From positions 1 to 46,536 of the forward strand of contig NIVC01004423.1 of the NCBI GenBank assembly GCA_002269645.1: DNA of 46,536 nucleotides, written 5' to 3'. How positions within the stretch are numbered: the stretch's first letter is position 1; each line of letters starts with the position of its first letter. Under the pieces are notes generated by a model, which was given only the letters and a program-made list of their open reading frames with translations, was not told where the DNA came from and ran no database searches. The position numbers and the translations under genes are program-made. This document shows, piece after piece, positions 18,010-43,490 of this stretch. The stretch is from Macrostomum lignano. Lineage: Eukaryota.

Positions 18010-21000
18010 ATGGCTCAGCAGACGCGAACTCGTAGCGGTGTTGCTACCAGTGCCGATGTTATTCACTTTGCTGGCGACAGCTCTTTTAGTAATATGGTAC
18101 GGTCTATTGTCATTTATTATATAAAGTACGCTCAGTTCTATTTTTTCAAATTTACAAATCTAAGTGCTAATGATGGTAATTTATTTTTTATTTTAGGACT
18201 GTGATAAACGGCTGAAGCTTCCAAAAAAGTGAGTTATTCAACTTTTCTAAAAATAGATCTTGAAGTACTATTACTATAACTCTATTAGTACATTTGTTAA
18301 AGTGCATTTAATAAAGTACACTAGTTGATTTGTATCAAGTACATAAGGATATTATTGCTTTTTCTTTCAGAGCATTGGTTAATTAGGTACATTCATATAA
18401 TTCAGTTACTAAAGTACACGATTTAAGCAGTATAGTCAGGAAACTCTATTAAAGTACATTTGTTAAAGTGTCTTGAAAAGCACATTCATTAAAGTGCATT
18501 TTTTTGGTTAAATTGCATTGAAGAAAAGAGCGTCTATTTAAGTACATTTGTGAAGTGCATTAAATAGTTCATTTTACACCCTTTATGTTCTTGTTGTAGA
18601 ACTGGTTTCGTGTATGACGAACGCATGACGTTGCACAAACACGATTGGAACCCGAAATTTAATGAAGCTCCGGAACGAATCACCACCACCCATGCCAGGC
18701 TGTGCGAACTGGGATTGGTGCAACGATGCGAGCGTATTAGTGTGAGGATTTGTCTGTGTTTTATTTTATTTATTAGAAGCAGGGGGGTTGTGTGCACCCT
18801 GGCGCACTTTAAGCGACATAGGCACACAACCGGCGGGAGGCATTACTGCCCATTCCGCCGACTCCCCTGAGCAGGCATACAAGCGCGCGGATACGTACGC
18901 AGGCACATACTCACACAGAAGTGTACAGCGGCCCTAACTTTATTTTCTGGTTAGGCATGTACACTTCACTGCGCCTTGGGGGGTTGGCTCTCAAGGCCGT
19001 TAATTGCACGAGCAGAGCCAAGCCGAGATTCCAATTCAGCTCCAAATTAATGTGACTGCACTTGGAATCGAGCCTGGGCCGCTGGCACACCAGAGCAGCT
19101 GCGCTACCGCTGGGCTACGGCCCCCCCCCCTTTGTCTGTGGTTACTAAGCTTGTTTCTAGGATGTTCATTTTGGTTTCTATTCCTGTTGCTAGGCTTAGT
19201 CGCTGCTGCTGTGAATCGCTAAGGGGTGACTCTTTTGTGACTTTTAAACGACTCAAACGACTGCAATGCGACGGAGAGGCGACTGTTGATTCACGAGAGC
19301 GCATCACGCGAGTTGCAGAATCGTAAAAAAGAGTCGCTAAAAAGTCGTCCAAAAGTCGTTGTGTTGGCGCTTAATAACTTTCCAAATGCGAAATGCGATT
19401 CTAATTCATCAAGTGACGCAGATGCGCTTTAGACGCAACCCTACAGTCCCAGAGTCGTTCCAGAGTTGCAGACCATAAAACATCTTAAATTGACACTTAA
19501 CGCGACTGTTTAGCAACTTTTGCCAAGATATCGTTTTCACATTGGAATCCGCGATTTTTTTGTAATCTGTCTCAGGCTGAACCAATCACCGACGAAGACA
19601 TCCTGCGGTTGCATTCGCCCGAATTGCTGCAACTATTAAAAGACAGTCAGCAGATGAGCGACGAGGAACAATGCAAACTAAGAGAGAAATTTGACGAGGC
19701 TCCGCTTAGTGTGGTAATTAGAAACCATAATTGCATGCTTTCAAATCAATTTACTGATAACTTTCTATTTAGCCTACTTCCAGCAGAGTAGATAAGGTTT
19801 TTTAAGTAAAAATTTGTTTACACTTTAGCACACGCACGATGCGGCCCGTCTATCAGCCGGCGGTTTGCTAAAACTGACCCAAGCTGTTCTGGATGGCAAG
19901 TTATTAAACGGATTCGCTCTGATCAGGCCGCCCGGGCATCACGCTATGCGCGATTATTTCAATGGATTCTGCTATCTTAATAATGTTTGCTTGTCGGCGT
20001 TGAAAGCGCTGTCTAGTTCCGAAGGAAAGAGGTTCGATTTCTGTCATATTTATGAATTCTCCGGTGACTATTTATTGATACTTTGATTTTGGGGAATCCT
20101 TTGTATAGCTTTGTTAAATATCGTGTCTATTTATAGCTCTGTGGCTGTAATTCCGTGTCTATTTATAGCTCTTTGGAAATCCCGTGTCTAATTATAGCTC
20201 TTTAGGAATTCCGTGTCCATTTATAGCTGTTTGGGAATCGCGTATCTATTTATAGCTCTTTGGAAATCCTGTGTCTATTTATAGCTCTTTGGAAATCCCG
20301 TGTCTATTTACAGCTCTTAGGGAATCTCGTGTCTATTTATAGCTTATTAGGAATTTCATGTCTATTTACAGCTTTTTGGGAATCATGCGTCTATTTATAG
20401 CTGTTTGGGAATCCCGGATCTATTTATAACTTTTTGGGAATCCCTTGTTTATTTATAGCTCTTTGGGAATCCTGTGTCTAATGTAGTGATGGATCGAAAT
20501 TATTTTTCAAATCCAAATCGAAATTTTCGGTTCTTTAGAATCGAAATCGAAATTGAAATCGAAATCAAAATCGAAGTTTTTTGAGCTTAACAAATTTTTA
20601 CTTTTTCGCTAATCATGCAAAAAGGTTAACACCTTGCCTCTGCATGTATGAGCTTACATGTTTTATAAAAAAGTATCTTTGATATGTTTAAACCAGAATA
20701 CTGAAGATTTAACTTAATTTAATAAAAATACGAAATAGAAAATGCTGGTGTATTATGTATTATACACTCGTACATAGAAATATAGTAGTTGTATTATACT
20801 TCGCCGCTGTTTAAGCTGAAGATCTAGATACGATTAGCCTATATCCATTTCATTAATTCTTCAAGTCTTTAGCCAATTAAAATCCACGCCGATGAGTTCA
20901 GCCAGTGGGCTTGTGGAGGTTGAGGTGGGTGCAGCACAAGGCCTGGAACAGTGTGTGCCCCGCACAATCTTTTCTTGTAGAAAAGGCGATTCTCACCTCC

Positions 21001-24058: not shown

Positions 24059-27000
24059 GGCAGGCAGACAGAATGACAGACACACAGACAGACAGACAGA
24101 ATGACAGACAGACAGACACACAGACAGACAGACACACACAGACAGACAGACAGACAGACAGGCAGACAGAATGACAGACACACAGACAGACAGAATGACA
24201 GACAGACAGACACACACAGACAGACAGACAGACAGACAGGCAGACAGAATGACAGACACACAGACAGACAGAATGACAGACAGACAGACACACAGACAGA
24301 CAGACACACACAGACAGACAGACAGACAGACAGGCAGACAGAATGACAGACACACAGACAGACAGAATGACAGACAGACAGACACAACCAATGATTTGGT
24401 ACCAATGATGCAGCATTAGCTTTTGCGGTATGGGCCTTAGGGTAAAAATGGCACCCTATAAGTGTAAATTAAAAATCGCCACTGAACTCCTTGAACTCCA
24501 GCCACGCCACTAAGCTGAAGTATCCGTGGGTGGAGTACAATCCAGAACTTACTCCTGAGCAACTAGTCGCCTTCGCCAAAGAAGTCGACCGCCTCACAGC
24601 CCTTGCCGACCTTCGACCTGCCGATGCCGACGCTAACAATTATCGCACCTGTCTGGCTTACGACGTTAAAATGTGCAGACACGAGAACCTGCTAGACCGG
24701 AGCCACCCGGAACTGCCTAGGCGCATTGTGTACATCTACGATCAGCTGTGCGCCAAAGGCCTGTCTGGACTGTGCCGATTTGCCAGCTCGCGCAGATGCA
24801 CAGACGAAGAGGCGATGCTGTTTCATACTCGCGACAATCTGGACATGATGGCCGCTTGGAGAAATTTGGACTCGGAGAGCGACAGATTTGCCGAGTTGCA
24901 AAGTCGATTTGATTCACTTTATGTGCATCCGGTGAGATGTTTGAAACTGTAATTAACCTGCCTCTAAACCTTTTTATAGGGCGAAAATTCTTGTCTATTA
25001 CATAGGAGTGAGATTTCCCAAATCTTTAGGTGAGAGATTTCCAAGTGTGTCTCATTGTGTCTGTGCGAGATTTCCAAGTCTGTCTCAGTCTGTTACTGTG
25101 AGATTTCCTGACTCCTTAGATGTGAGGTTTCCCGAATCCTTAGAGGATCTAATCTAATCGAATCCTTAGAGATGAGATTTCCCGAATCCTTAGAGGTGAG
25201 ATTTCCCGAATCCTTAGAGGTGAGATTTCCCGAATCCTTAGAGGTGAGATTTCCCAGATCCTTAGAGGTGAGAATTCCCGAATCCTTAGAGGTGAGATTT
25301 CCACGTTTTTCTCAATCTGTCACTGTGAGATTTGCAAGTGTGTCTCATTATGTCAGTGTGAGATTTCCAAGCTTGTCTCACTCTGTTAGGTGAGATTTCT
25401 AAGGAATCTGTCAGTTTCTAAGGCAGATATCCAATACTAACCCAATCTAATTGCGATGAGAGTTGATCCAGTCGAAAACCCGCAACCGATTTTTCAGCTG
25501 TCCTACGATGCCGCTCAGCTGAGCTGCGGCACTCTGCTCTCAGTGGTGGAAGAAGTTTGCTCCGGCCGCAGCAGAAACGGTTACGCAATAGTCCGCCCGC
25601 CTGGGCATCACGCAGAATCCGACAAGCCTCGAGGCTTCTGCTTCATCAACAATGTAGTGGTGGCGGCTCGTTACGCTCAGACTAAACATTCTAATAAAGT
25701 ACGCCGCGTACTTATCCTAGACTGGGATGTGCATCACGGAAACGGAGTTCAAGACGCTTTCTATAGTGACGACTCTGTGCTGTACATCAGCCTGCACCGC
25801 TACGACTTTGGTCGCTTCTATCCTGGTAGTAGCGGCGCTAAGGAGAATGTCGGCTGCGACAAAGGATTGGGGTACAATGTTAATGTGCCCTGGAATGTGA
25901 GTCAGTTCTAATGTTATGGTAGTGGGTCCGGATTCTGGGTCAAGGGGTCCAGATTCAGGGTCAGTGAGTCTAGATTCTGGGTCAAGGGGCCAGATTCTGA
26001 CTCAATGGGTCTAGATTCTGACTCAATGGGTCTAGATTCTGACTCAATGGGTCTAGATTCTGACTCAATGGGTCTAGATTCTGACTCAATGGGTCCAGAT
26101 TCTGACTCAATGGGTCCAGATTCTGACTCAATGGATCTAGATTCTGACTCAATGTTTCTAGATTCTGACTCAATGGGTCCAGATTCTGGGTCAGTGAGTC
26201 TAGATTCTGGGTCAGTGAGTCTAGATTCTGGGTCAAGGGGCCAGATTCTAACTTAATGGGTCCAGATTCTGACTCAATGGGTCCAGATTCTGACTCAATG
26301 GGTCTAGATTCTGACTCAATGGGTCTAGATTCTGACTCAATGGGTCCGGATTCTGACTCAATGGGTCCAGATTCTGGGTCAGTGAGTCTAGATTCTGGGT
26401 CAAGGGGCCAGATTCTGACTCAATGGGTCTAGATTCTGGGTCAGTGAGTCTAGATTCTGGGTCAAGGGGCCAGATTCTGACTCAATGGGTCCAGATTCTG
26501 ACTCAATGGGTCTAGATTCTGACTCAATGGGTCCAGATTCTGGGTCAGTGAGTCTAGATTCTGACTCAATGGGTCCAGATTCTGACTCAATGGGTCCAGA
26601 TTTTGACTCAATGGGTCTAGATTCTGACTCAATGGGTCCAGATTCTGGGTCAGTGAGTCTAGATTCTGGGTAAAGGGGTACAACTGGGTCAGTGGGATAA
26701 CGATTTTGAGTAAATGAATCTAAATTCTGGGTCGGTGAGTCTAGATTCTAGGTCAATGGGTTGAGAGTGTAGGTCAATGGGTCCAGAATCTGGGTCGGTT
26801 AGTCCAGATTCTAGGTCAGTGGGATGGACGTTCTGGGTCGGTTAATCCAGATTCTGGGTCAGTGGGATTTAGATTCTGGGTCAGTGGGATTTAGATTCTG
26901 GGTCAGTGGGATTTAGATTCTGGGTCAGTGGGATTTAGATTCTGGGTCAGTGGGATTTAGATTCTGAGTCAGTGGGATTTAGATTCTGGGTCAGTTGAGA

Positions 27001-29194
27001 TTCTGGGTCAGTGAGTCTATATTCTGGGTCAAGGGGTACAACTTCTGGGTCAGTGGGATTTAGATTCTGTGTCAATAGATACAGATTCTGGGTCAGTAAG
27101 TCCAGATTCTGTGTCAGTGGGATTTGAGGTTCTGGACCAGTGGGGATTAAGATTCTGGGTCACTCAATGAAAACCTCAGGATTCCAATGATCAATCATAC
27201 AGTCACCCGTCCCAAGTTCAATTCTCAGCCTCAACTTTGCCCCCCACCCACCTGCACTCTCAAATGCATAGGGCAGAGTCGGGGACGCCGAGTACTTGGC
27301 CGCTTTCCACCACATTGTGCTGCCAATTGCTCAGTCGTTCAATCCCGACCTGGTCCTGGTCTCCGCTGGCTTCGACGCAGCAGTTGGCGACCCGCTGGGC
27401 GGATTAAAGCTCACCCCTGCCTGCTACGGTCACCTGGCTCACCTGCTGTGCGGCCTGGCTGGTGGGCGGGTCGTGCTGGCGCTGGAGGGCGGCTACAATC
27501 TGGCGTCTATTGGCGAGGCCTCGTGCCATTGTGTGGCTTCTCTGCTGGGCCTGCCGCCCCTGCAGCTGCCCAAGCAGCTGGTGCCAAACGTTCAGTGAGC
27601 TGATGGGTTCTATTCGCATTCTATCCTGATTCTATTCGACTTCTATCCAGATTCTATTCGCATTCTATCCTGATTCTATTCGACTTCTATCCAGATTCTA
27701 ATCGGGTTCTATCCAGATTCTATTCGACTTCTATCCAGATTCTAATTGGATTCTATCCAGATTCTATTCGACTTCTATCCAGATTCTATTCGCATTCTAT
27801 CCAGATTCTAATCGGGTTCTATCCAGATTCTATTCGACTTCTATCAAGATTCTATTCGCATTCTATCCAGATTCTAATCGGGTTCTATCCAGATTCTATT
27901 CGACTTCTATCCAGATTCTATTCGGATTCTATCCAGATTCTAATCGCATTCTCTCCAGATTCTAATCGGATTCTATCCAGATTCTGATTGGATTCTATCC
28001 AGATTCTACTCGGATTCTATCCAGATTCTAGTCGGATTCTATCCAGATTCTAATTGGATTCTATCCAGATTCTACTCAGATTCTATCCAGATTCTAATCG
28101 GATTCTATCCAGATTCTAATCGGATTCTATCCAGATTCTAATCTGATTCTATCCAGATTCACTCTCGTGTTCAATATACATTCGACCAGACGTATATTTG
28201 ATTGATATTTATTAAATCCAATATTAAAACTTTTCAGTGGTGTCAGAGCAATCAGGGAAGTGATCGATATTCACAAGGCTTATTGGAAGCATCTTAAGTT
28301 TTCAGGTATGAGTTTAATTCAGTTTTACACAGTATTTAATTTAGAATATTGTGAGGAAAGGCATATTTTTTACTTGCTTAATTTTAATTCCAGACGATAT
28401 CCCGAACTGGGTGACCAGCCTGCCAGAGGATGCCACTAAGTGAGCGTTTATTTATTTGTTTATTTAAAGTTGTTCCACAGACACATATGTACAAGTACAA
28501 TGTGTTTATTGTCGCTAAAGTCACACACAAACAGATGTACAATGCGTTTATTGGGTCTAGTTGCACAGATCGGCCTTTACGTTCGTTATTGTTCATTTTA
28601 AAAGCATTGATGTATAGAATTAATACCGTGCAGACTAATATGTTTCATTAATTCCCTCTCGTAACCCCGTGCAGATCAGCTGACAGCGTCAACACTTCGG
28701 TGGACCAGCTGGCCCGAGAACTCGACAATTTGGACGTTTCCGCCGCCGCAACGTCGGTGACAGACTTCATCGAAGCTTCTTCAACTGCTGCTGCTGCTGC
28801 TGCTGCTGCTTCTGGCGGAGCTGTCGGCGGTTTTGAATTTCTTCTTCTAGAGGATCAGCAATTTTTTGCCGTTCATCCTCGATCGGATTGTCCTCACGTG
28901 ATCCAGCCGAGTCACGTGACTCGCATAGCCGACGGTCGCGGAGTTGACGCTCGAGCAGTCTGTCAGACTTGCTCGGATGGCAGCGAGAACTGGCTCTGCC
29001 TGGCCTGCCTGGAGACCCACTGCGGCAGGTACGTGTCTAAGCACATGCTGAGCCACAGCGAGTCTACTGGCCACGTCATCGCTCTGTCATTTAGCGATCT
29101 GTCTGTGTGGTGCTACCACTGCGACTCGTACATTGTGTCGCCTGTGGTGGAGCCGTTCATTGCCGCGGCTGCCAGGTCCAAGTTTGGCGAATAA
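18010..29194 (+). CDS. HDAC6: Histone deacetylase 6 (CD1 + CD2 + ZnF-UBP). Exons 18010-18096, 18197-18228, 18600-18741, 19576-19713, 19829-20031, 21329-21590, 22618-22677, 22763-22852, 23417-23646, 24502-24931, 25498-25896, 27272-27594, 28238-28305, 28394-28439, 28675-29194.
   Basis: Two catalytic domains, each with RPPGHHA, DWDVHHG, SAGFD and LEGGY; C-terminal ZnF-UBP ([30 protein letters not shown]). All junctions are GT-AG and phase-consistent; no frameshift seen. The two short 5' exons are the least certain. Confidence 0.93.
18780..19122 (-). mobile_element. tRNA-derived SINE-like element in HDAC6 intron 3
   Basis: Minus strand has Pol III A box TAGCCCAGCGG (19117-19107) and B-box-like GGCTCGATTCC (19074-19064) at tRNA-like spacing; 3' boundary uncertain. 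Confidence 0.55.
20120..20480. repeat. 29-30 bp minisatellite (TTTATAGCTCTTTGGGAATCCCGTGTCTA), HDAC6 intron 5
   Basis: Tandem units read directly. Confidence 0.9.
20484..21221. mobile_element. Non-autonomous hAT-type DNA transposon (738 bp), HDAC6 intron 5
   Basis: Perfect 18-bp TIR TAGTGATGGATCGAAATT / AATTTCGATCCATCACTA; exact 8-bp TSD GTCTAATG at 20476-20483 and 21222-21229; subterminal TCGAAA repeats at both ends. Confidence 0.9.
21645..22565. repeat. 20-bp minisatellite (GAGATGAGATTGGAGCTTGG) with higher-order variants, HDAC6 intron 6
   Basis: Tandem units read directly. Confidence 0.9.
22915..23375. repeat. 24-25 bp minisatellite (GGGGAAGACAATCACAGGTAATTA), HDAC6 intron 8
   Basis: Tandem units; related degenerate copies at about 15805-15900. 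Confidence 0.92.
23866..24385. repeat. (GACA)n-type microsatellite, HDAC6 intron 9
   Basis: Read directly. Confidence 0.95.
25000..25400. repeat. 24-bp minisatellite (GTGAGATTTCCCGAATCCTTAGAG) with degenerate flanks, HDAC6 intron 10
   Basis: Tandem units read directly. Confidence 0.85.
25922..27165. repeat. 21-bp minisatellite (GGGTCCAGATTCTGACTCAAT and variants), HDAC6 intron 11
   Basis: Tandem units read directly. Confidence 0.92.
27607..28160. repeat. 22-bp minisatellite (CTATCCAGATTCTAATCGGATT), HDAC6 intron 12
   Basis: Tandem units read directly. Confidence 0.92.
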
Positions 29195-29911
29195 ATTTTG
29201 CTATGCGAATATGCACTACTGATGTCAGACTGTCCGGCTTTAATTATATTCTAAGATAATCAATAAAATCATATCTAATTGTTACTGTTTTGCTGAATTT
29301 TATTATTTTTATTTTATTATAATCTTATTTTATGCTGCAGATGAAATTAAAATTCCCTACTTGAAATCTGGTTAATTTAATTGATTAATTCGGCAAGTTT
29401 GAAAATCAATATATTGAAATGCATAACGTTGTTGCTTCATTGTCTAGTTGTTTTAGGGGCTGATCTCCAAGGCACAGAGAGTGTACATGCCTGACGATTA
29501 GGGCCACTGTACACCCTGTGTGAGCGTGTGTGTGACTGCGTGCTTGCATACAGTATTGGAAGTTAGTGGAATGGGCAGAAGTGGTGTGTGGGGGACACAG
29601 CCGTCCTGCAAATATTTGCTATTTATTGTTTCGTGGGAAACAAGTATTTTCTTGGTGCTTTCACAACTGGCAAATTTAAGCAAACTTAAAAGCAACAAGT
29701 GAAACATGAATTGCTGCGCTCTCTGTGCTGGATAGTGCTTCACCTTGCGGATTTATTTCCAACATACCGTCTCAAAAGAGATCGGTAAATTTTGGGGTAG
29801 TTCTACGCAGGTATACAATTTTGTAATGCATTCCAACGTTTAGATGTATTTGTCTTGACTACAGGTCGATGGTTGCTTTCGTCGACTCGTCTATTTCATT
29901 TGGTGTTTTGC

Positions 29912-30990
29912 TTAGTACAGATAGGCAGGTACAAGCCATTTTTTGTTCCTGAAGCCGTCGGAGAGCCACTTCTTGTTCCTGAAGCCGTCGGAGGGCCACT
30001 TCTTGTTCCTGAAGCCGTCGGAGAGCCACTTCTTGTTCCTGAAGCCGTCGGAGAGCCACTTCTTGTTCCTGAAGCCGTCGGAGAGCCACTTCTTGTTCCT
30101 GAAGCCGTCGGAGAGCCACTTCTTGTTCCTGAAGCCGTCGGAGAGCCACTTCTTGTTCCTGAAGCCGTCGGAGAGCCACTTCTTGTTCCTGAAGCCGTCG
30201 GAGAGCCACTTCTTGTTCCTGAAGCCGTCGGAGAGCCACTTCTTGTTCCTGAAGCCGTCGGAGAGCCACTTCTTGTTCCTGAAGCCGTCGGAGAGCCATT
30301 TCTTGTTCCTGAAGCCGTCGGAGAGCCACTTCTTGTTCCTGAAGCCGTCGGAGAGCCACTTCTTGTTCCTGAAGCCATCGGAGAGCCATTTCTTGTTCCT
30401 GAAGCCATCGGAGCGCCACTTCTTGTTCCTGAAGCCATCGGAGAGCCATTTCTTGTTCCTGAAGCCATCGGAGAGCCACTTCTTGTTCCTGAAGCCATCG
30501 GAGAGCCACTTCTTGTTCCTAAAGCCATCGGAGAGCCATTTCTTGTTCCTAAAGCCATCGGAGAGCCACTTCTTGTTCCTGAAGCCGTCGGAGAGCCACT
30601 TCTTGTTCCTGAAGCCGTCGGAGAGCCACTTCTTGTTCCTGAAGCCATCGGAGAGCCACTTCTTGGTTTCTTGTCGATAGTCTGCCACCTCATGGACTCC
30701 GGTTACTCCATCCTTAGTCTGTAAAAATCAACCAGAAATGAAGTAGAAATTCAAATAGCACTTCAATCCAGAATAACCATAAATTTCTATAACTGTCTAA
30801 ATCGAATTTCGCACTTACGATGTCACTTGATGCCCCGTCGACAGAAGCAGTTGAGAATGCAAGAACTGAAAATGGTAATGATGCGAATCAAGCAACGTGA
30901 AACTTCATTAAACCTTGGAATAAGCAAATACGAGCGATGTGCCATGATGCACATACCACAAGCGGCAACAAGCCAAGCAGTTGGTCGCAT
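29912..30990 (-). CDS. Putative neuropeptide precursor, 295 aa. Exons 30990-30957, 30865-30819, 30718-29912. Signal peptide plus 24 copies of KK-WLSDGFRN (22 exact, one WRS, one WPS).
   Basis: Spliced N-terminus MRPTAWLVAACVLAFSTASVDGASSDITKDGVTGVHEVADYRQET; GT-AG junctions with phases 1 and 0; recurrent unit variants AAG/AAA, GAC/GAT and TTC/TTT are synonymous in this frame; AATAAA on the minus strand at 29757-29752. Confidence 0.82.
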
Positions 30991-31870
30991 CTTTGCCGGT
31001 GTTGCAAGAACACTGTTCGTTTAGTTCTATTATTTTCCTTAAATTCTGACTTGTTGGATTTTATTCAGCTGATTGAAAGTCTCTTGATTCCTTGACTCAG
31101 CGAAAGAAAAGCGAAGGTATTTCGCAGACTTACATGGAGGCTTCCATGCGCCTCCGCTCCGCATCCAGTTAAAGGTCTTGTCGGTGCTTCGACCAATCAG
31201 AAATGTTCGCCCAAATTTATCAGTTTTAACGACAGTGAAGCCGCCTGCCAAGTTAAAACCGTCAGTTTTAACGCATTTTTCGTTGTGTCAATAGTTGAAT
31301 TTCCGTTTAAACAAAAATGCATTGTTTGAGTTGTATAAGGTTCTAGAGTGAATGCAGTGTCTGTGCTGATTCCCTTGCAAAATTCTGCATAGAAAACTGC
31401 TGTCAAAGTTAATTTGGCAGCCGGTTCCGCCTTCGTCAGCTGTGCTCAATTTTCCGTGTATATCAAATTCTTCATCAAACTATATTCTGCTGGGGAACAC
31501 AGATTGCTTGGCCCGGCAAAGGAGCCTCCTGATTGAATTTCCTGCATAGCTTGGCTTCTCCCGGAACAATATGTGCTCTTCTAGCGGAGCCTTGCATGGC
31601 TTGACTTTGGCTTGTTCGAGATGCAATCTGCATGCGTCCAAGAGTTGCTTGCAACATTGATCAGATTAAGCGGCCACTCTTTCAGGGCAATCTTTTCGGC
31701 TATTCAGGTCGAGGTTCAGATTGTTTAATCGCAACAAAGTACACCATATATTTCAACATGAATTTTCAGTAACATAACACTCGTTCACCCGACCGTCAAA
31801 TCAGTCATCGAAAAAAGTCAAGACGCCCGGTTAGCATTTTAGTATACTCCCGTCGTGTCCTAAGAAAAAT

Positions 31871-34389: not shown

Positions 34390-37382
34390 ATGGCGGAAAC
34401 GAGTGAATGGCGGGAGGACATGCGAGATACATTCAACATGTTCGACAAGAACGGAAATGGAGAAATCGAAGTGAACGAGCTGAGAACCGTTATCCAGTGC
34501 CTGGGACAGAATCCCACCGAGAAGGACGTACAGGTAAGAATCAGATAGAACATGATTAGGGTCGAGGGATGAGAAGAATATTGACTGCTAAGGATAGAAA
34601 AGATATTCGTACAAAGTAAAGATAGTGAGACAATTAGGGTGGATGAGTGTGGTAAATGGTATGGTACTTGAGTAAAAAAACTCGGCGTGTGGTAAATAGT
34701 ATGGGAGTGCGGTAAAGACTAGGCGGAGTTTTAAAGATTAGGGGGTGTAGTAAATAGTAAGAGTGGGGTAAGAATGACAATAAATGCATTTCCAAAGTGA
34801 GATTATTACACAGCCGTGTTTGCAACATAAAATTTTAATGCTTTTCTGCAGCTGATGATTCAAGAGTACGACCTAAACAAGGATGGTACAATCAATTTTG
34901 AGGAATTCTGCCAGGTGGGTGATGTATTGTCAGTCACTCAAACATGTTTATGATAATCTGATTATTAATAATTTAATAATTTTTATTCAATCAATAAAAA
35001 TCAACTCTAGATGATGAAGAATCGAATCAAAACGGTCGAGTCCAAGCAGAACGAAATGAAGGTGGCGTTTCAGATGTTCGACAAAAATGGCGATGGGTGA
35101 GGGCTCGATCAGGTGTACTTACCGCTTTCTGATGCATTGTTAAGTACAGGTCGCCATCGGGGGGGGGACCCGATGGGTCATGTCCCTCTCACAGTAAAAG
35201 CTTTTGGGTAGACTGCAATGCTTTGTCACCTCCACCTAATTGTGACCCGTTGTGAGGAAATCAAAAGTTTTTCTTCAGGGCGCCAAATTGAGTGCCTGCC
35301 TGCGCGCCAAAATGAGTGCCTGCCTGCGCGCCAAAATGAGTGCCTGCCTGCGCGCCAAAATGAGTGCCTGCCTGCGCGCCAAAATGAGTGCCTGCCTGTG
35401 GCGCCAAAATGAGTGCCTGCCTGCGGCGCCAAAATGAGTGCCTGCCTGCGGCGCCAAAATGAGTGCCTGCCTGCAGCGCCAAAATGAGTGCCTGCCTGCG
35501 GCGCCAAAATGAGTGCCTGCCTGCGGCGCCAAAATGAGTGCCTGCAGCGCCAAAATGAGTGCCTGCCTGCGGCGCCAAAATGAGTGCCTGCCTGCAGCGC
35601 CAAAATGAGTGCCTGCCTGCGGCGCCAAAATGAGTGCCCTGCCTGCGGCGCCAAAATGAGTGCCTGCCTGCGGCGCCAAAATGAGTGCCTGCCTGCGGCG
35701 CCAAAATGAGTGCCTGCGATGCCAAAATGAGTGCCTGCCTGCGATGCCAAAATGAGAGCCTGCGATGCCAAAATGAGTGCCTGCCTGCGATGCCAAAATG
35801 AGTGCCTGCCTGCGGTGCCAAAATGAGTGCCTGCCTGCGGTGCCTAAATGAGTGCCTGCCTGCGGTGCCAAAATGAGTGCCTGCCTGCGGTGCCAAAATG
35901 AGTGCCTGCCTGCGATGCCAAAATGAGTGCCCTGCCTGCGGTGCCAAAATGAGAGCCTGCGATGCCAAAATGAGTGCCTGCCTGCGATGCCAAAATGAGT
36001 GCCTGCCTGCGGTGCCAAAATGAGTGCCTGCCTGCGGTGCCAAAATGAGTGCCTGCCTGCGGTGCCAAAATGAGTGCCTGCCTGCGGTGCCAAAATGAGT
36101 GCCCTGCCTGCGGCGCCAAAATGAGTGCCTGCCTGCGGCGCCAAAATGAGTGCCTGCCTGCGGCGCCAAAATGAGTGCCTGCCTGCGGTGCCTAAATGAG
36201 TGCCTGCCTGCGATGCCAAAATGAGAGCCTGCGATGCCAAAATGAGTGCCTGCCTGCGATGCCAAAATGAGTGCCTGCGATGCCAAAATGAGTGCCCTGC
36301 CTGCGATGCCAAAATGAGTGCCTGCGATGCCAAAATGAGTGCCTGCCTGCGGTGCCTAAATGAGTGCCTGCCTGCGATGCCAAAATGAGTGCCTGCGATG
36401 CCAAAATGAGTGCCTGCCTGCGATGCCAAAATGAGTGCCTGCGATGCCAAAATGAGTGCCTGCCTGCGATGCCAAAATGAGTGCCCTGCCTGCGGTGCCA
36501 AAATGAGAGCCTGCGATGCCAAAATGAGTGCCTGCCTGCGATGCCAAAATGAGTGCCTGCCTGCGGTGCCAAAATGAGTGCCTGCCTGCGGTGCCAAAAT
36601 GAGTGCCTGCCTGCGGTGCCAAAATGAGTGCCTGCCTGCGGTGCCAAAATGAGTGCCTGCCTGCGGCGCCAAAATGAGTGCCTGCCTGCGGCGCCAAAAT
36701 GAGTGCCTGCCTGCGGCGCCAAAATGAGTGCCTGCCTGCGGTGCCTAAATGAGTGCCTGCCTGCGATGCCAAAATGAGAGCCTGCGATGCCAAAATGAGT
36801 GCCTGCCTGCGATGCCAAAATGAGTGCCTGCGATGCCAAAATGAGTGCCTGCCTGCGATGCCAAAATGAGTGCCTGCGATGCCAAAATGAGTGCCCTGCC
36901 TGCGATGCCAAAATGAGTGCCTGCGATGCCAAAATGAGTGCCTGCCTGCGATGCCAAAATGAGTGCCTGCGATGCCAAAATGAGTGCCCTGCCTGCGATG
37001 CCAAAATGAGTGCCTGCGATGCCAAAATGAGTGCCCTGCCTGCGGTGCCAAAATGAGTGCCTGCGGTGCCAAAATGAGTGCCTGCCTGCGGTGCCTAAAT
37101 GAGTGCCTGCGGTGCCAAAATGAGCGAACAACGCCAATTCTCAGAATAATGTACATGTAGGAATAGTCATGTAGAATGCTTGCTGTCCCCCCCCCCTACA
37201 ATAAAATCCATGCGACAAAAAACTCCAGGAAAATCAGCAGCAACGAGCTGATGGAGGTGATGACGAAACTCGGCGAGAAGCTGACCATGGACGAAGTCAA
37301 AGAGATGATTACCGAGGTTGACGTTAACAACGACGGGTTCATCGACTATGGAGAGTTCGTGCAGATGTACGCGACCAACTAG
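34390..37382 (+). CDS. Calmodulin-like four-EF-hand protein, 148 aa. Exons 34390-34533, 34852-34914, 35011-35096, 37229-37382.
   Basis: EF loops [48 protein letters not shown]; linkers LGQNPTE and LGEKLT; phase-consistent GT-AG junctions. Too divergent to be canonical calmodulin. Confidence 0.92.
35280..37125. repeat. About 20-25 bp minisatellite (GCCAAAATGAGTGCCTGCCTGCG[GC/GT/AT]) filling calmodulin-like intron 3
   Basis: Tandem units; source of the many repetitive ORFs at 35218-37156. Confidence 0.95.
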
Positions 37383-38732: not shown

Positions 38733-40978
38733 TCAAATATACATCATCATCTTGATGAAGTTGTCCTGCTCCAAAGCCTCCTTTGTCTTCACAGTCGCTT
38801 CGTAGGTAGTAAAAGCGGTCCTCATTCGCACCGATAGCAGGATGAAATCCTCGAAGCTCACGACGCCCTTAGTTGGGTCCGTATACCGCATGGCAACCGT
38901 CTCGAACACCTTGTTGCTCAGATTGTAGCCGGCAGCTTTCAAAGCGTCGCGCAGCTCGAACGAGTCAAATGAGCCATTTCCATCGGCGTCTTTCTCTTTG
39001 AAAATTGTCTTTAGCAGGCGGATCTGGTTCCAAAGCACTTTGAACTCGTCGAATTCCATGTAGCCGGACATGTTCAGGTCCATCAGAGCAAGCATGCTGC
39101 GACAGGCTTCGGCGCTGAATCCGGAAAACTCCTTCACCTCTTTGCCGAAGGATCTGTTCAGGATCTGCTGCAGCTGGAATGCGTGAATTCGACCCGCGCC
39201 GCCGGAGAAGCCCTGGAAGGCTTTGCGCAACGGTTCCTCGTTCTCCGGTGCGCTGACGGGGCGGCGATGGCCGGACTGACCTCCATCTTTGTCTCCGAGT
39301 CCAGCACAGCCGCGAGGTTCGGCTTTTCGGAGAACATGCGCAGTATGAATTGCGCCTCCTCGTTCGGATTAAAGGTAGAGGGCACGATCACGTATCGACC
39401 CGGGGGTAGCTTGTGCCGGCCGCTCACCTCGCGTTGATTTACAAACGCCGACTTATCCGTCTGTTTGTTATAGCGGAAGAACTTCTGGTCAAGGGGGCTG
39501 TCATTATGGCCTCTCAGCTGGTAAATAGCATAGCCAATGGTGAAATATTCGCCGCCAACTGTGATCTTGCGCACGTCCTTCTGCATTAGGCCGACAATAA
39601 TGGTGCCCAGATTTTCATCGTCTTCTTCATCCGGGTCGACAATCTCCACGCGGAACTGCTGATTAGTGTGGAAGCTGTCAATGAAGTTCCTGCAGCCGCC
39701 GGCGCTCACGTTCTTCTTCCACTCGCCCTTCTCTATGCTGATCTCCCAGCGGCGCTTTTTGGCGGCGGCGCCCTTCACAGTGCCGGACATGGTCTCTGGG
39801 CACAGGTGGCAAATCTCCAGTTTAGTGAACTCCTGGACAAAGTCTTTGAACGCCATCCAGAACTCGCCATCATCGCTGGCGTCCATTTTCAGCCGGGATT
39901 TCTCATCCGCGTTGACTTGGTTCCACAGGGGGCTCCGGTCGCTCCAGTCGCCTTTCCACTCGCACTCGTTGCCCCACGGGTTGCGAACCCGGACTAGCGC
40001 TTCTTCCTGGCCGTTTTTCAGTTTGCAGTTTCTGACGTCAGTCACAGAGTAAGCGTGTCCAGTGATCAGGCCGTTTTCTAGTTCGCCCTCAATCTCCTCG
40101 CTCTCAATGCTGCATCCCATCAGAGACTCGCTTTTGTTGGCCTGAAACATCACGCTAAACAAGTCGGCCGGTGCCTTGATGAGATCGAAGTTTTCGCACA
40201 GGCCGCCGGTGAAGTCCTCCATAGCCTCGGACTGGCTCCCACCTGTCAGGGCCTCATAGCTACCGTTGACTTTAGCGTAGGCTTTCTCTAGTAGGGCCGA
40301 CCAGAACTCGTTGCGATCCTGGCTGCGCATGAAGCAGAGCCGCCCCGCCTTAGTAGGCAGCCGATCATCGACAACCACCTCTTTCCAGCGGCCAAAGTGC
40401 CAAAACCGGAAACGGAACATTCCACAATAGCCTGCGTCGAAATCCTGACCGGGAGGAACCACTCGGTCAAATAAACTTTTGTTCATAGAAAGGGAAGCAA
40501 TTGAAGCCAGTAGCCAACAGTCGCCCAGTTCTCCTTGTTTAACATCGAACCGGCTGACACCATCGCTAATAAACATTGGCGATTGGCAGATTTCTTTCGG
40601 CCGCTTCCACACATACCTCTGATTAGGCCTCGAAGGATAAATGCTGCGACCCTCCGCTGGGAATTTGGGATCCTCGTACAATTGCTTGGATTGAATCAGG
40701 TTCTTTCTCAGCTCCTCTAAGTCTATCTTTTTTACAACTGCGTCTTGCAAATTTCCAGTGGAGGCGGCGACTAAAGCACGAGGTGATTTGTTAGCAGATC
40801 CGATGGCGGGTTTGAGTACGTCCTGTTGCTGAGATTGCGGCTGTTGCGGCGGCGCCGGCTGCTGCGGCCTCGGCTGAGCCTGGCTTGAAGCTGTTACAGT
40901 AGCTGGACTCGCAGCAGATTGCGTCTTCGAGTCGTTGCTGGTGTTCAGGTACTCGCGAACAATCTTGACGCGTGACAT
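38733..40978 (-). CDS. Classical calpain (CysPc, C2-like domain III, penta-EF), intronless CDS with one apparent -1 frameshift near 39258-39261
   Basis: Catalytic QGELGDCW, GHAYS and RNPWG; FWSALLEKAYAK; YVIVPSTF; the penta-EF domain is in the overlapping ORF 38733-39230. One extra base in the G4 run joins the two ORFs. Confidence 0.92.
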
Positions 40979-41799
40979 TTTGCTGGATCTAATTTTTTAC
41001 CCTATTCAGAATGTCGCTTTTGGTGTAGCCAAATTTTTGTAGCCAAATAGCGCTTTTCTATATCATATTCGGTGTCTCTAAAACTTATAGTTTTTTTAAC
41101 AAAAGGGGACGAACAAGAGATGGCTGGAACGGAGACTTAATTTAAAAGCCTCGTGCATGCCACACAGCTATAAGACTGCCTGTCCATTGTTCTCAGCAAT
41201 CCGCTCTTACCCAACTGTACTGCAGCAACTTGCCGGTTTGAATATGAGCGAATTCGCCCACTGAGCCCCCCCCCCCCTGGAATTGTGTTCAGCGCAAAGC
41301 AACTGCGTGCGACATTCTGTCGCCCCAACTTAAATATTGACCATTGTATAAGCATAACGAATGAGTAATGCAATTTTGCGACAAGTGACGGAGGAGCTCA
41401 CATACGCTCGGACGCATCTAATTGAGGCCGGTTCAAACTACCGCTAGTGGCTTCGCGGGCCAAAGATTGCTCAATGAATCAGCCACTCGCGGTAAAGTGA
41501 ACCGCGGCTTAAGCCAGCTAAAGTGATGCAGATTTGCAGTGAATAGTTAACTGTCAAATAATAAAAGAAAAATACCAAAACTAAAGCTCGAAGAATAATA
41601 GTGATTGATATACTCAAACTCTTCAATAATTTAATTGTTTATTACCCCACCACCAATTGTCCGTTTTAAAGGTGACAAAACAGAATCAGTTCGGTTTGTT
41701 AATGTCAACTAACACTGCAACTAGTCATTGGTTAGTATAGATTCCTTCATCGAATACAAGCTTTGGTGGATTAGAACAGACATTTCCTTTGCCACTAGA

Positions 41800-43490
41800 T
41801 TAGTAAGATCCGTAGCTTCCCTTATCACCAGACGGATAAGGATCGTAGCTTCCAGTGCCGCCAGACGGATAGGGGTCAAAGCTTCCAGTGCCGCCGGACG
41901 GATAGGGGTCAAAGCTTCCAGTGCCGCCAGACGGATAGGGGTCAAAGCTTCCAATATCGGCAGACGGGTAGGATCCATAACTTCCATAATCCATATCCCG
42001 TTTCTTCCAATACGAGCTGCTTGGGTAGTAAGAGGAGTAGCTGCTTGGGTAGTAAGAGGAGTAGCTGCTTGGGTAGTAAGAGGAGTAGCTGCTTGGGTAG
42101 TAAGAGGAGTAGCTGCTTGGGTAGTAAGAGGAGTAGCTGCTTGGGTAGTAAGAGGAGTAGCTGCTTGGGTAGTAAGAGGAGTAGCTGCTTGGGTAGTAAG
42201 AGGAGTAGCTGCTTGGGTAGTAAGAGGAGTAGCTGCTTGGGTAGTAAGAGGAGTAGCTGCTTGGGTAGTAAGAGGAGTAGCTGCTTGGGTAGTAAGAGGA
42301 GTAGTAGGAGCTATATTCACGCTTCTTGTAAGAGTACGAGTAGGACGGGTAGCTACTGCTTGGGTAGAAAGAGGAGTAGCTGCTTGGGTAGAAAGAGGAG
42401 TAGCTGCTTGGGTAGAAAGAGGAGTAGCTGCTTGGGTAGAAAGAGGAGTAGCTGCTTGGGTAGAAAGAGGAGTAGCTGCTTGGGTAGAAAGAGGAGTAGC
42501 TGCTTGGGTAGAAAGAGGAGTAGCTGCTTGGGTAGTAAGAGGAGTAGCTGCTTGGGTAGTAAGAGGAGTAGTAGGAGCTATATTCACGCTTCTTGTAAGA
42601 GTACGAGTAGGTGGGGTAGCTGCTGCTCGGGTAGTACGAGTAGGTGGGGTAGCTGCTGCTCGGGTAGTACGAGTAGGTGGGGTAACTGCTGCTCGGGTAG
42701 TACGAGTAGGTGGGGTAGCTGCTGCTCGGGTAGTACGAGTAGGTGGGGTAGCTGCTGCTCGGGTAGTACGAGTAGGTGGGGTAGCTGCTGCTCGGGTAGT
42801 ACGAGCTATATTCCCGCTTCTTGTAAGAGTACGAGTAGGACGGGTAGCTGCTGCTCGGGTAGTAGGTGGGGTAACTGCTGCTCGGGTAGTACGAGTAGGT
42901 GGGGTAACTGCTGCTCGGGTAGTACGAGTAGGTGGGGTAACTGCTGCTCGGGTATTACGAGTAGGTGGGGTAACTGCTGCTCGGGTAGTAGGTGGGGTAA
43001 CTGCTGCTCGGGTAGTACGAGTAGGTGGGGTAGCTGCTGCTCGGGTAGTACGAGCTATATTCCCGCTTCTTGTAAGAGTACGAGTAGGACGGGTAGCTGC
43101 TGCTCGGGTAGTAGGTGGGGTAACTGCTGCTCGGGTAGTACGAGTAGGTGGGGTAACTGCTGCTCGGGTAGTAGGTGGGGTAACTGCTGCTCGGGTAGTA
43201 CGAGTAGGTGGGGTAGCTGCTGCTCGGGTAGTACGAGCTGTATTCGCGCTTCTTGTAAGAGACATCGAAGCTTGTTGGATAGTAGCTTGGATCGTAGTAT
43301 GAAGAAAAATCGTTTAACGGTTTCTAAAATTTTCACAACAGTTTTCAAAAAAACATTAGCAATGACATAAAACCGAACGAGTATGAGCAAACAGAAGCAT
43401 GAAATACATTTATTAGTTGATTGCACTTACCGCATCAGCGGCAGCAGATGCCAGAATCAAGAGTGCTGTCAGCAAGCAAACCTGACGCAT
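41800..43490 (-). CDS. Secreted Tyr/Ser/Pro-rich repeat polyprotein with six KKR sites. Exons 43490-43431 and 43323-41800; 527 codons with one in-frame TAA at 42957-42955.
   Basis: Exon 1 encodes the signal peptide MRQVCLLTALLILASAAADA (GTAAGT donor, phase 0). Acceptor TTTTAG at 43324 opens the frame KPLNDFSSYYDPSYYPTSFDVSYKKREYSSYYPSSSYPTY..., which ends in the annotated ORF 41800-41994. AGC/AGT, CGN and TAC/TAT variants are synonymous in this frame. AATAAA on the minus strand at 41643-41638. Confidence 0.75.

Follow-up and report, generated by a model that had tools for sequence, protein, structure and literature searches.

Genes and tandem repeats of the contig

The window analyzed here spans the complete contig NIVC01004423.1 (46,536 bp) from assembly Mlig_3_7 (GCA_002269645.1) of Macrostomum lignano. 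The candidate peptide gene described below has two neighbors on the plus strand, a TTLL-type ORF and HDAC6; the latter has Hist_deacetyl and zf-UBP exons and its stop codon at 29194. A four-exon EF-hand gene and then a calpain gene follow. The 30-bp tandem repeat that the initial annotation had placed behind HDAC6 does adjoin it, and HDAC6 and the candidate gene, which is on the minus strand, are convergent. Two AATAAA signals on the plus strand, at 29190 and 29262, belong to HDAC6 itself, and the array should accordingly lie outside the HDAC6 3'UTR. A search with the HDAC6 zf-UBP exon returned no M. lignano protein.

The EF-hand gene (34390-37380, plus strand) encodes a calmodulin-like protein of 148 aa in four exons, and its third intron (2.1 kb) is filled by a 25-bp minisatellite of 76 copies (35282-37124). 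A frameshift near 39257-39260 breaks the calpain gene (38733-40978, minus strand) into two overlapping ORFs, of 606 and 165 aa, whereas it is intact, with a single exon, in the sister contigs (748 and 753 aa); the split is either a long-read indel error or the mark of a decaying duplicate. The contig is extremely dense in minisatellites, with 66 TRF rows in the 46.5 kb (overlapping rows counted) and periods of 3 to 181. One array, with a period of 37 bp, occupies 1-1073, and another, in which a 21-bp unit is repeated 57 times, lies between HDAC6 exons (25923-27121). A 313-aa gene annotated in GenBank (41800-43490, minus strand) consists almost wholly of 24- and 33-bp minisatellite units (TTRAAATPPTR..., TPLTTQAA...), and since multiple reading frames of both strands are open over 41721-43370, this gene call may be no less arbitrary than the frame that GenBank gives for the peptide gene.

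Two further copies of the region were compared. Contig NIVC01001881.1 (L003) is about 97-99% identical to the window around the peptide gene, which leaves too few differences to give a dN/dS comparison any power. Contig NIVC01000084.1 (L001) is more diverged (88-94% identical); the stretch of it compared, 546298-568559, reaches to within about 800 bp of the peptide gene at the end that aligns to window position 31770. Its EF-hand protein differs from that of the window at four residues.

Structure of the candidate peptide-precursor gene

A 295-aa ORF with the layout MRPTAWLVAACVLAFSTASVDGASSDITKDGVTGVHEVADYRQET-(KK-octapeptide)x24-KKWLVPAYLY* results when the minus-strand segments 30990-30957, 30865-30819 and 30718-29912 are joined. 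The two small GT-AG introns that had been proposed here both carry consensus splice sites (GTATGT...TTTTCAG, 91 nt, and GTAAGT...TTTTACAG, 100 nt). Exon 1 (30957..30990) starts with the ATG at 30990, encodes MRPTAWLVAAC and the first base of the next codon, and ends at the donor GTATGT; its sequence is identical in L003. It is predicted to form the n- and h-region of a signal peptide, as this start has Arg at position 2, an 11-residue hydrophobic core and then small residues (STASVDG-A). Intron 1 (30866..30956, 91 nt, GTATGTGC...CCATTTTCAG) shows no differences from L003. Exon 2 (30819..30865, 47 nt) encodes (V/F)LAFSTASVDGASSDI and likely holds the end of the signal peptide with a putative signal-peptidase site. 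Most of the differences between the window and L003, one of them in length, are concentrated in intron 2 (30719..30818, 100 nt, GTAAGTGC...GATTTTTACAG), which also contains a stop in the peptide frame three codons upstream of the acceptor.

Exon 3 opens with a pro-region (TKDGVTGVHEVADYRQET, 30665..30718) and continues with the repeat body (29945..30664), in which 24 in-register 30-nt units each encode KK and an octapeptide. The last unit is degenerate (29912..29944) and reads KKWLVPAYLY before the stop codon TAA (29914-29912). The stop thus directly follows the array, an AATAAA signal is located about 155 nt farther downstream on the same strand (29752..29757), and from this arrangement the peptide gene looks like an independent transcription unit. 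No Cys is present in the precursor after the signal peptide.

An alternative first exon, here called exon 0 (31134..31164, minus strand; ATGCGGAGCGGAGGCGCATGGAAGCCTCCAT), encodes MRSGGAWKPP and is followed by the donor GTAAGT. When it is spliced straight to exon 2 and exon 1 is skipped, the product begins MRSGGAWKPPFLAFSTASVDG..., a much weaker signal peptide: the best 9-residue Kyte-Doolittle mean is 1.66 from the exon 0 start and 2.97 from the exon 1 start. Each of the two starts keeps the frame, and they share the exon 2-encoded region with the putative signal-peptidase site. Exon 0 is the start used in the UniProt models A0A1I8FXQ2 and A0A1I8FTA2, so that, of the gene model in the initial annotation, the structure is present in the sequence while its exon 1 is skipped by these database models (start 31164-31134). 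An CTGATTGG motif resembling an inverted CCAAT box is recognized at 31193-31200 (minus strand), where it precedes the ATG of exon 0 by about 30 nt, and an AATAAA is situated between exon 0 and exon 1 (31060-31065, minus strand); with these two elements, exon 0 might belong to a separate upstream transcript or to an alternative promoter.

The spliced starts were evaluated under fixed rules, namely an ATG, a donor GT[AG][AT]GT, a pyrimidine-rich YAG acceptor and an in-frame join to exon 3. The real sequence upstream of exon 3 (about 480-500 nt) contains exactly two models under these rules. Among 3000 dinucleotide-preserving shuffles, 126 contained any spliced-start model, and only five had one with a hydropathy of at least 2.4 and equaled the exon 1 model, so the hydrophobic spliced start claimed for this gene is indeed rare by chance. 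For the combination of a spliced secretory N-terminus with a KK-bounded multicopy layout, a chance origin is unlikely.

The repeat array and its predicted peptides

The 30-bp array was recognized by TRF at 29934-30665, with 24.4 copies, 97% matches and no indels. All of the 24 octapeptides are flanked by KK, and every site has the form R-N-K-K with Arg at P4. The initial annotation counted 24 copies of WLSDGFRN; the 24 KK-octapeptide units are there, and WLSDGFRN itself makes up 22 of them, unit 9 being WRSDGFRN and unit 23 WPSDGFRN. Because no Gly precedes KK, there is no amidation signal and WLSDGFRN is expected to be non-amidated, as had been stated, and our independent calculation agrees with the given [M+H]+ of 994.47.

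Three variants recur between the units (position 6 G>A, position 18 C>T and position 24 C>T). In the peptide frame, none of the recurrent variants alters a residue, and every variant that does so occurs just once. The claim that the recurrent variants are silent in this frame and change amino acids in the others holds for the other two frames of the same strand; the antisense frame FLKPSESHFL, however, is likewise left unchanged by them. Its third codon positions coincide with those of the peptide frame, and for that reason it passes this test and the codon test alike. The silent-variant argument is therefore weak, since it comprises just three mutational events and the antisense frame passes too. 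In codon-usage log-odds (against the window genes) and in phase-specific GC, the peptide frame and this antisense frame were equally favored, and the non-repeat coding part of the precursor scored slightly negative; because the antisense frame scores equally, codon usage was dropped as evidence for the peptide frame. The frame is uninterrupted by indels over 24 units in the window and 30 in L003, whereas the nearby calpain gene does carry a frameshift. The 97% identity of the array DNA indicates that it is evolutionarily young or homogenized, and long-term constraint is not readable from it.

The array differs in copy number between the window (24 units, 29945-30664) and L003 (30 units, 19818-20717), and in L003 one KN and one KR spacer, both absent from the window, are found, of which KR is still dibasic. 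Alleles or recent duplicates therefore differ in peptide dose and at one cleavage site.

Database models of the locus

In GenBank, the locus is annotated as a single-exon ORF of 265 aa in another frame (29896..30693, minus strand; MRWQTIDKKPRSGSPMASGTR...) without a signal peptide, and an equivalent ORF of 295 aa in that frame is called in L003. An exact-sequence cluster search with the 265-aa ORF gave no match. In the annotated frame, SGSP(M/T)ASGTR, all three recurrent variants are non-silent and the codon usage amounts to -4.6 bits per unit, and the ORF is probably a mis-framed call of the longest ORF with an ATG. UniProt, however, contains two fragments in the peptide frame from the older ML2 assembly: A0A1I8FXQ2 (P0126), which is named 'Secreted protein' and matches the L003 allele, and A0A1I8FTA2 (P0210), which matches the window allele. 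Both are independent models, and both agree with the precursor in the boundaries of exon 2, in its junction with exon 3 and in reading frame. The gene, which had been called hidden, is thus mis-annotated rather than wholly hidden: GenBank gives another frame, and fragments in the peptide frame were already deposited in UniProt.

A paralogue in M. lignano and searches beyond it

A paralogue was found in M. lignano inside UniProt A0A1I8IJ38 (P0124), a mis-predicted model of 1007 aa. Its array reads ...HEVSGYDDDERLTKK(W[IL]GDGFRSKK)x11 or, in fuller context, ...SSHEVSGYDDDERLTKK(W[IL]GDGFRSKK)x11 WIAG.... Put differently, it has 11 copies of KK-W-[IL]-G-D-G-F-R-S preceded by HEVSGYDDDERLT and followed by KKWIAG..., and its layout and peptide core match those of the window gene. 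Six of the eight positions of WLSDGFRN are kept, with Gly for Ser at position 3 and Ser for Asn at position 8, and Ile and Leu alternate in a three-unit pattern. Before the first KKW, the paralogue has SSHEVSGYDDDERLT where the window precursor has its pro-region, and the context HEV..Y..E..TKKW ahead of the first unit is common to both. The retention of KK-W-[IL]-x-D-G-F-R-x in the paralogue is in favor of the peptide reading of the initial annotation. The paralogue gene was not found at the loci near the paralogous calpain.

A homologue beyond M. lignano was not found in word-indexed, phmmer or metagenome searches. The word-indexed search of the precursor against 5.8 billion proteins gave no match and is an unreliable negative, since it also missed the existing UniProt fragments. 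An exhaustive phmmer search of 1.84 billion representatives gave 344 hits, four of which are M. lignano entries, and all of the inspected hits outside M. lignano were unrelated low-complexity repeat proteins. In the metagenomes, the single match, at 592-915 of L005 (Ga0116192_1091817), a high-GC bacterial contig, was rejected as a chance match to a membrane protein of the bacterial small-multidrug-resistance type, which shares SDGFRNKKWL, a chance identity of 10 residues to the repeat junction. Pfam matches of the repeat translations (PMG, DNAP_B_exo_N and Intu_longin_1) were likewise discarded as repeat artefacts, no single stretch passing alone. The papers searched contained no relevant mention of WLSDGFRN or its fragments, no expression or peptidomic data for it and no neuropeptide catalogue for M. 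lignano. In the supplementary files examined from Collins et al. 2010 on Schmidtea mediterranea (PMC2953531), the strings KKWL, KKWI, KRWL, DGFR and GFRN were absent.

Evaluation of alternative explanations

The 30-bp array is one of many in this contig, and it might be a non-coding minisatellite in which the open frame, the dibasic pairs and the 'exons' are coincidental and the database proteins prediction artefacts. Besides the abundance of tandem repeats in the window, this is favored by the behavior of the frames: four of the six frames are open across the 30-bp array, the annotators chose a different one of them, and neither the variant test nor the codon test isolates a single frame. In the other minisatellites of the window with a period that is a multiple of 3, one to five frames are open, and two of these arrays have about one dibasic pair per unit, so that an open frame with one dibasic pair per unit is not unusual here. 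In addition, the UniProt models P0121 and P0124 (A0A1I8IJ38) are clearly junk fusions. Nevertheless, coincidence would have to account for the consensus splice sites of both introns and a hydrophobic start seen in so few shuffles, for a poly(A) signal on the appropriate strand, and for a paralogue conserved at the peptide level, including non-repeat residues before the first KKW. It would also have to account for a frame free of disrupting indels over 24 units in one contig and 30 in another, in a long-read assembly in which the neighboring calpain is frameshifted. We therefore regard the non-coding reading as rather improbable. It is less probable still that the array is translated in another frame, either SGSP(M/T)ASGTR as annotated on the same strand or FLKPSESHFL on the plus strand. 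GenBank calls ORFs in the former on both contigs, and the latter equals the peptide frame in the silent-variant and codon tests. The SGSP frame, however, is changed by every recurrent variant, has unfavorable codon usage and lacks a secretory start, whereas FLKPSESHFL has neither an ATG nor an upstream exon, lies beyond the poly(A) signals of HDAC6, and is matched in Pfam only by repeat artefacts.

If the peptide frame is translated, the product might be a secreted repetitive protein that is left uncut, such as a gland, mucus, adhesive or seminal-fluid protein, with KK serving for charge or cross-linking. M. lignano makes repetitive secreted gland proteins. The gene structure and the secretory start fit such a protein equally well, and perfect 10-residue repeats with two lysines each would suit a structural or adhesive role too. 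A structural repeat, however, usually conserves only its composition, whereas the paralogue keeps the octapeptide core and KK exactly; the unit is also highly complex, with nine different residues, and its composition is not of the Tyr/DOPA-type, Cys-rich or Gly/Ser-rich. The layout also matches that of precursors in which cleavage at KK is documented by mass spectrometry (Platynereis WLD), and an uncut protein seems unlikely to us. The reading that we favor, with reasonable but by no means complete confidence, is that a gene of three exons on the minus strand encodes a secreted multicopy peptide precursor, with the array as its coding body.

Proposed processing and significance

As judged from its architecture, the precursor is probably genuine, lineage-restricted and neuropeptide-like, with one paralogue. 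In the proposed processing, the N-terminus (MRPTAWLVAACVLAFSTASVDG) would direct the protein into the secretory pathway and then be removed, a prohormone convertase would cut after each Lys-Lys (R-N-K-K, with Arg at P4), and a carboxypeptidase would trim both lysines. The products would be about 22 copies of non-amidated WLSDGFRN, one each of WRSDGFRN and WPSDGFRN, the C-terminal peptide WLVPAYLY and an N-terminal pro-peptide. Once released, the peptides would most likely serve in extracellular signaling, as neuropeptides or peptide hormones. From sequence features we infer the transcription of this exact isoform, the cleavage at KK, the release, the neuronal or gland expression and any receptor, and a role in neuronal signaling is less certain than a secreted, processed precursor.

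M. lignano is a genetic model flatworm for research on regeneration, ageing and reproduction. If real, the precursor and its paralogue would add a two-gene family of non-amidated peptides, a kind missed by the searches and antibodies directed at amidation that are in common use for flatworms. Peptide surveys based on homology or annotation would also miss the locus, given its mis-framed GenBank entry and its fragmentary UniProt entries. The concrete mass and sequence given above can be used in peptidomics, in situ hybridization, RNAi and receptor screening. For minisatellite-rich genomes in general, the locus suggests that dozens of non-coding arrays can conceal one that encodes a multicopy precursor, and that an open frame with dibasic pairs is by itself an unsafe criterion for precursor genes.

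Comparison with known peptide systems

The initial annotation saw a resemblance of WLSDGFRN to the pedal peptide/orcokinin superfamily, which our comparison does not support. Many non-amidated copies between dibasic sites, some of them KK, are common to this family and the M. lignano precursor, and both have a Gly-Phe or Phe-x-Gly element near the C-terminus. Peptides of this family are about 12-20 residues long overall, with the conserved pattern x-F-D-x-I/L-G...F-x-G. Those compared have 14-15 residues or more and the pattern x-F-D-S-I-G...S-x-F-x-G-L, whereas WLSDGFRN has only eight, starts with Trp and lacks FDxIG; the comparison with the Platynereis peptides SFDSIGHSSNFAGLD and AFDSIGHHSAFGGL thus speaks against membership, and no sequence search tied WLSDGFRN to the family. 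The npp/spp-type prohormones of the planarian Schmidtea mediterranea belong to the same general class of lineage-restricted multicopy precursors.

The closest known architecture is that of the WLD proneuropeptide of Platynereis dumerilii (UniProt F8UKU1), as judged by sequence layout. The WLD precursor has a signal peptide and about 20 tandem, non-amidated copies of WLDNSQF[KR]xED, mostly separated by KK (Conzelmann et al. 2013, PMC3890597). WLDNSQFKDED and WLDNSQFRED were detected by mass spectrometry, as were the KK-flanked, non-amidated copies of pedal-peptide-1 in the same annelid (PMC3890597), and these provide a precedent for the cleavage at KK to non-amidated peptides that had been proposed for the M. 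lignano precursor. No orthologue of WLD outside Platynereis was reported there, and an effect of WLD on ciliary beating is attributed to earlier work cited in that paper (PMC3890597).

The WLD and M. lignano precursors have in common KK, a Trp-Leu start, a later Phe-Arg/Lys and non-amidation. BLASTP of the WLD array against the M. lignano array gave 34-37% identity with an E-value of about 1e-7, which is inflated because the match is essentially KKWL plus F-R/K, repeated. There are also differences: the WLD peptides, of the pattern W-L-D-x-S-x-F-[KRN]-x-[DE], have 10-11 residues, an acidic tail and Phe at position 7, whereas WLSDGFRN has Phe at position 6 and no acidic tail and does not share Asp-3 and Ser-5. 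Furthermore, both ends of the WLD precursor are rich in Cys (CHKCKSLEGAAKLKCVARAC in the N-terminal and CFHQHCAHLAKMNYQNCVQARC in the C-terminal region), and the M. lignano precursor has no comparable non-repeat region. Homology of the two is possible but unproven. The M. lignano precursor is a directly testable candidate in a model flatworm, with a possible link to the annelid WLD peptides. In a bolder reading, which we think quite unlikely, WLSDGFRN and W[IL]GDGFRS would be the ligands in a flatworm peptide-signaling system not described before and also true homologues of annelid WLD. If it were true, the WLD peptides would represent a family of non-amidated Trp-Leu peptides spread more widely among spiralians, and, as this animal moves by ciliary gliding, a function in ciliary locomotion could be tested in it.
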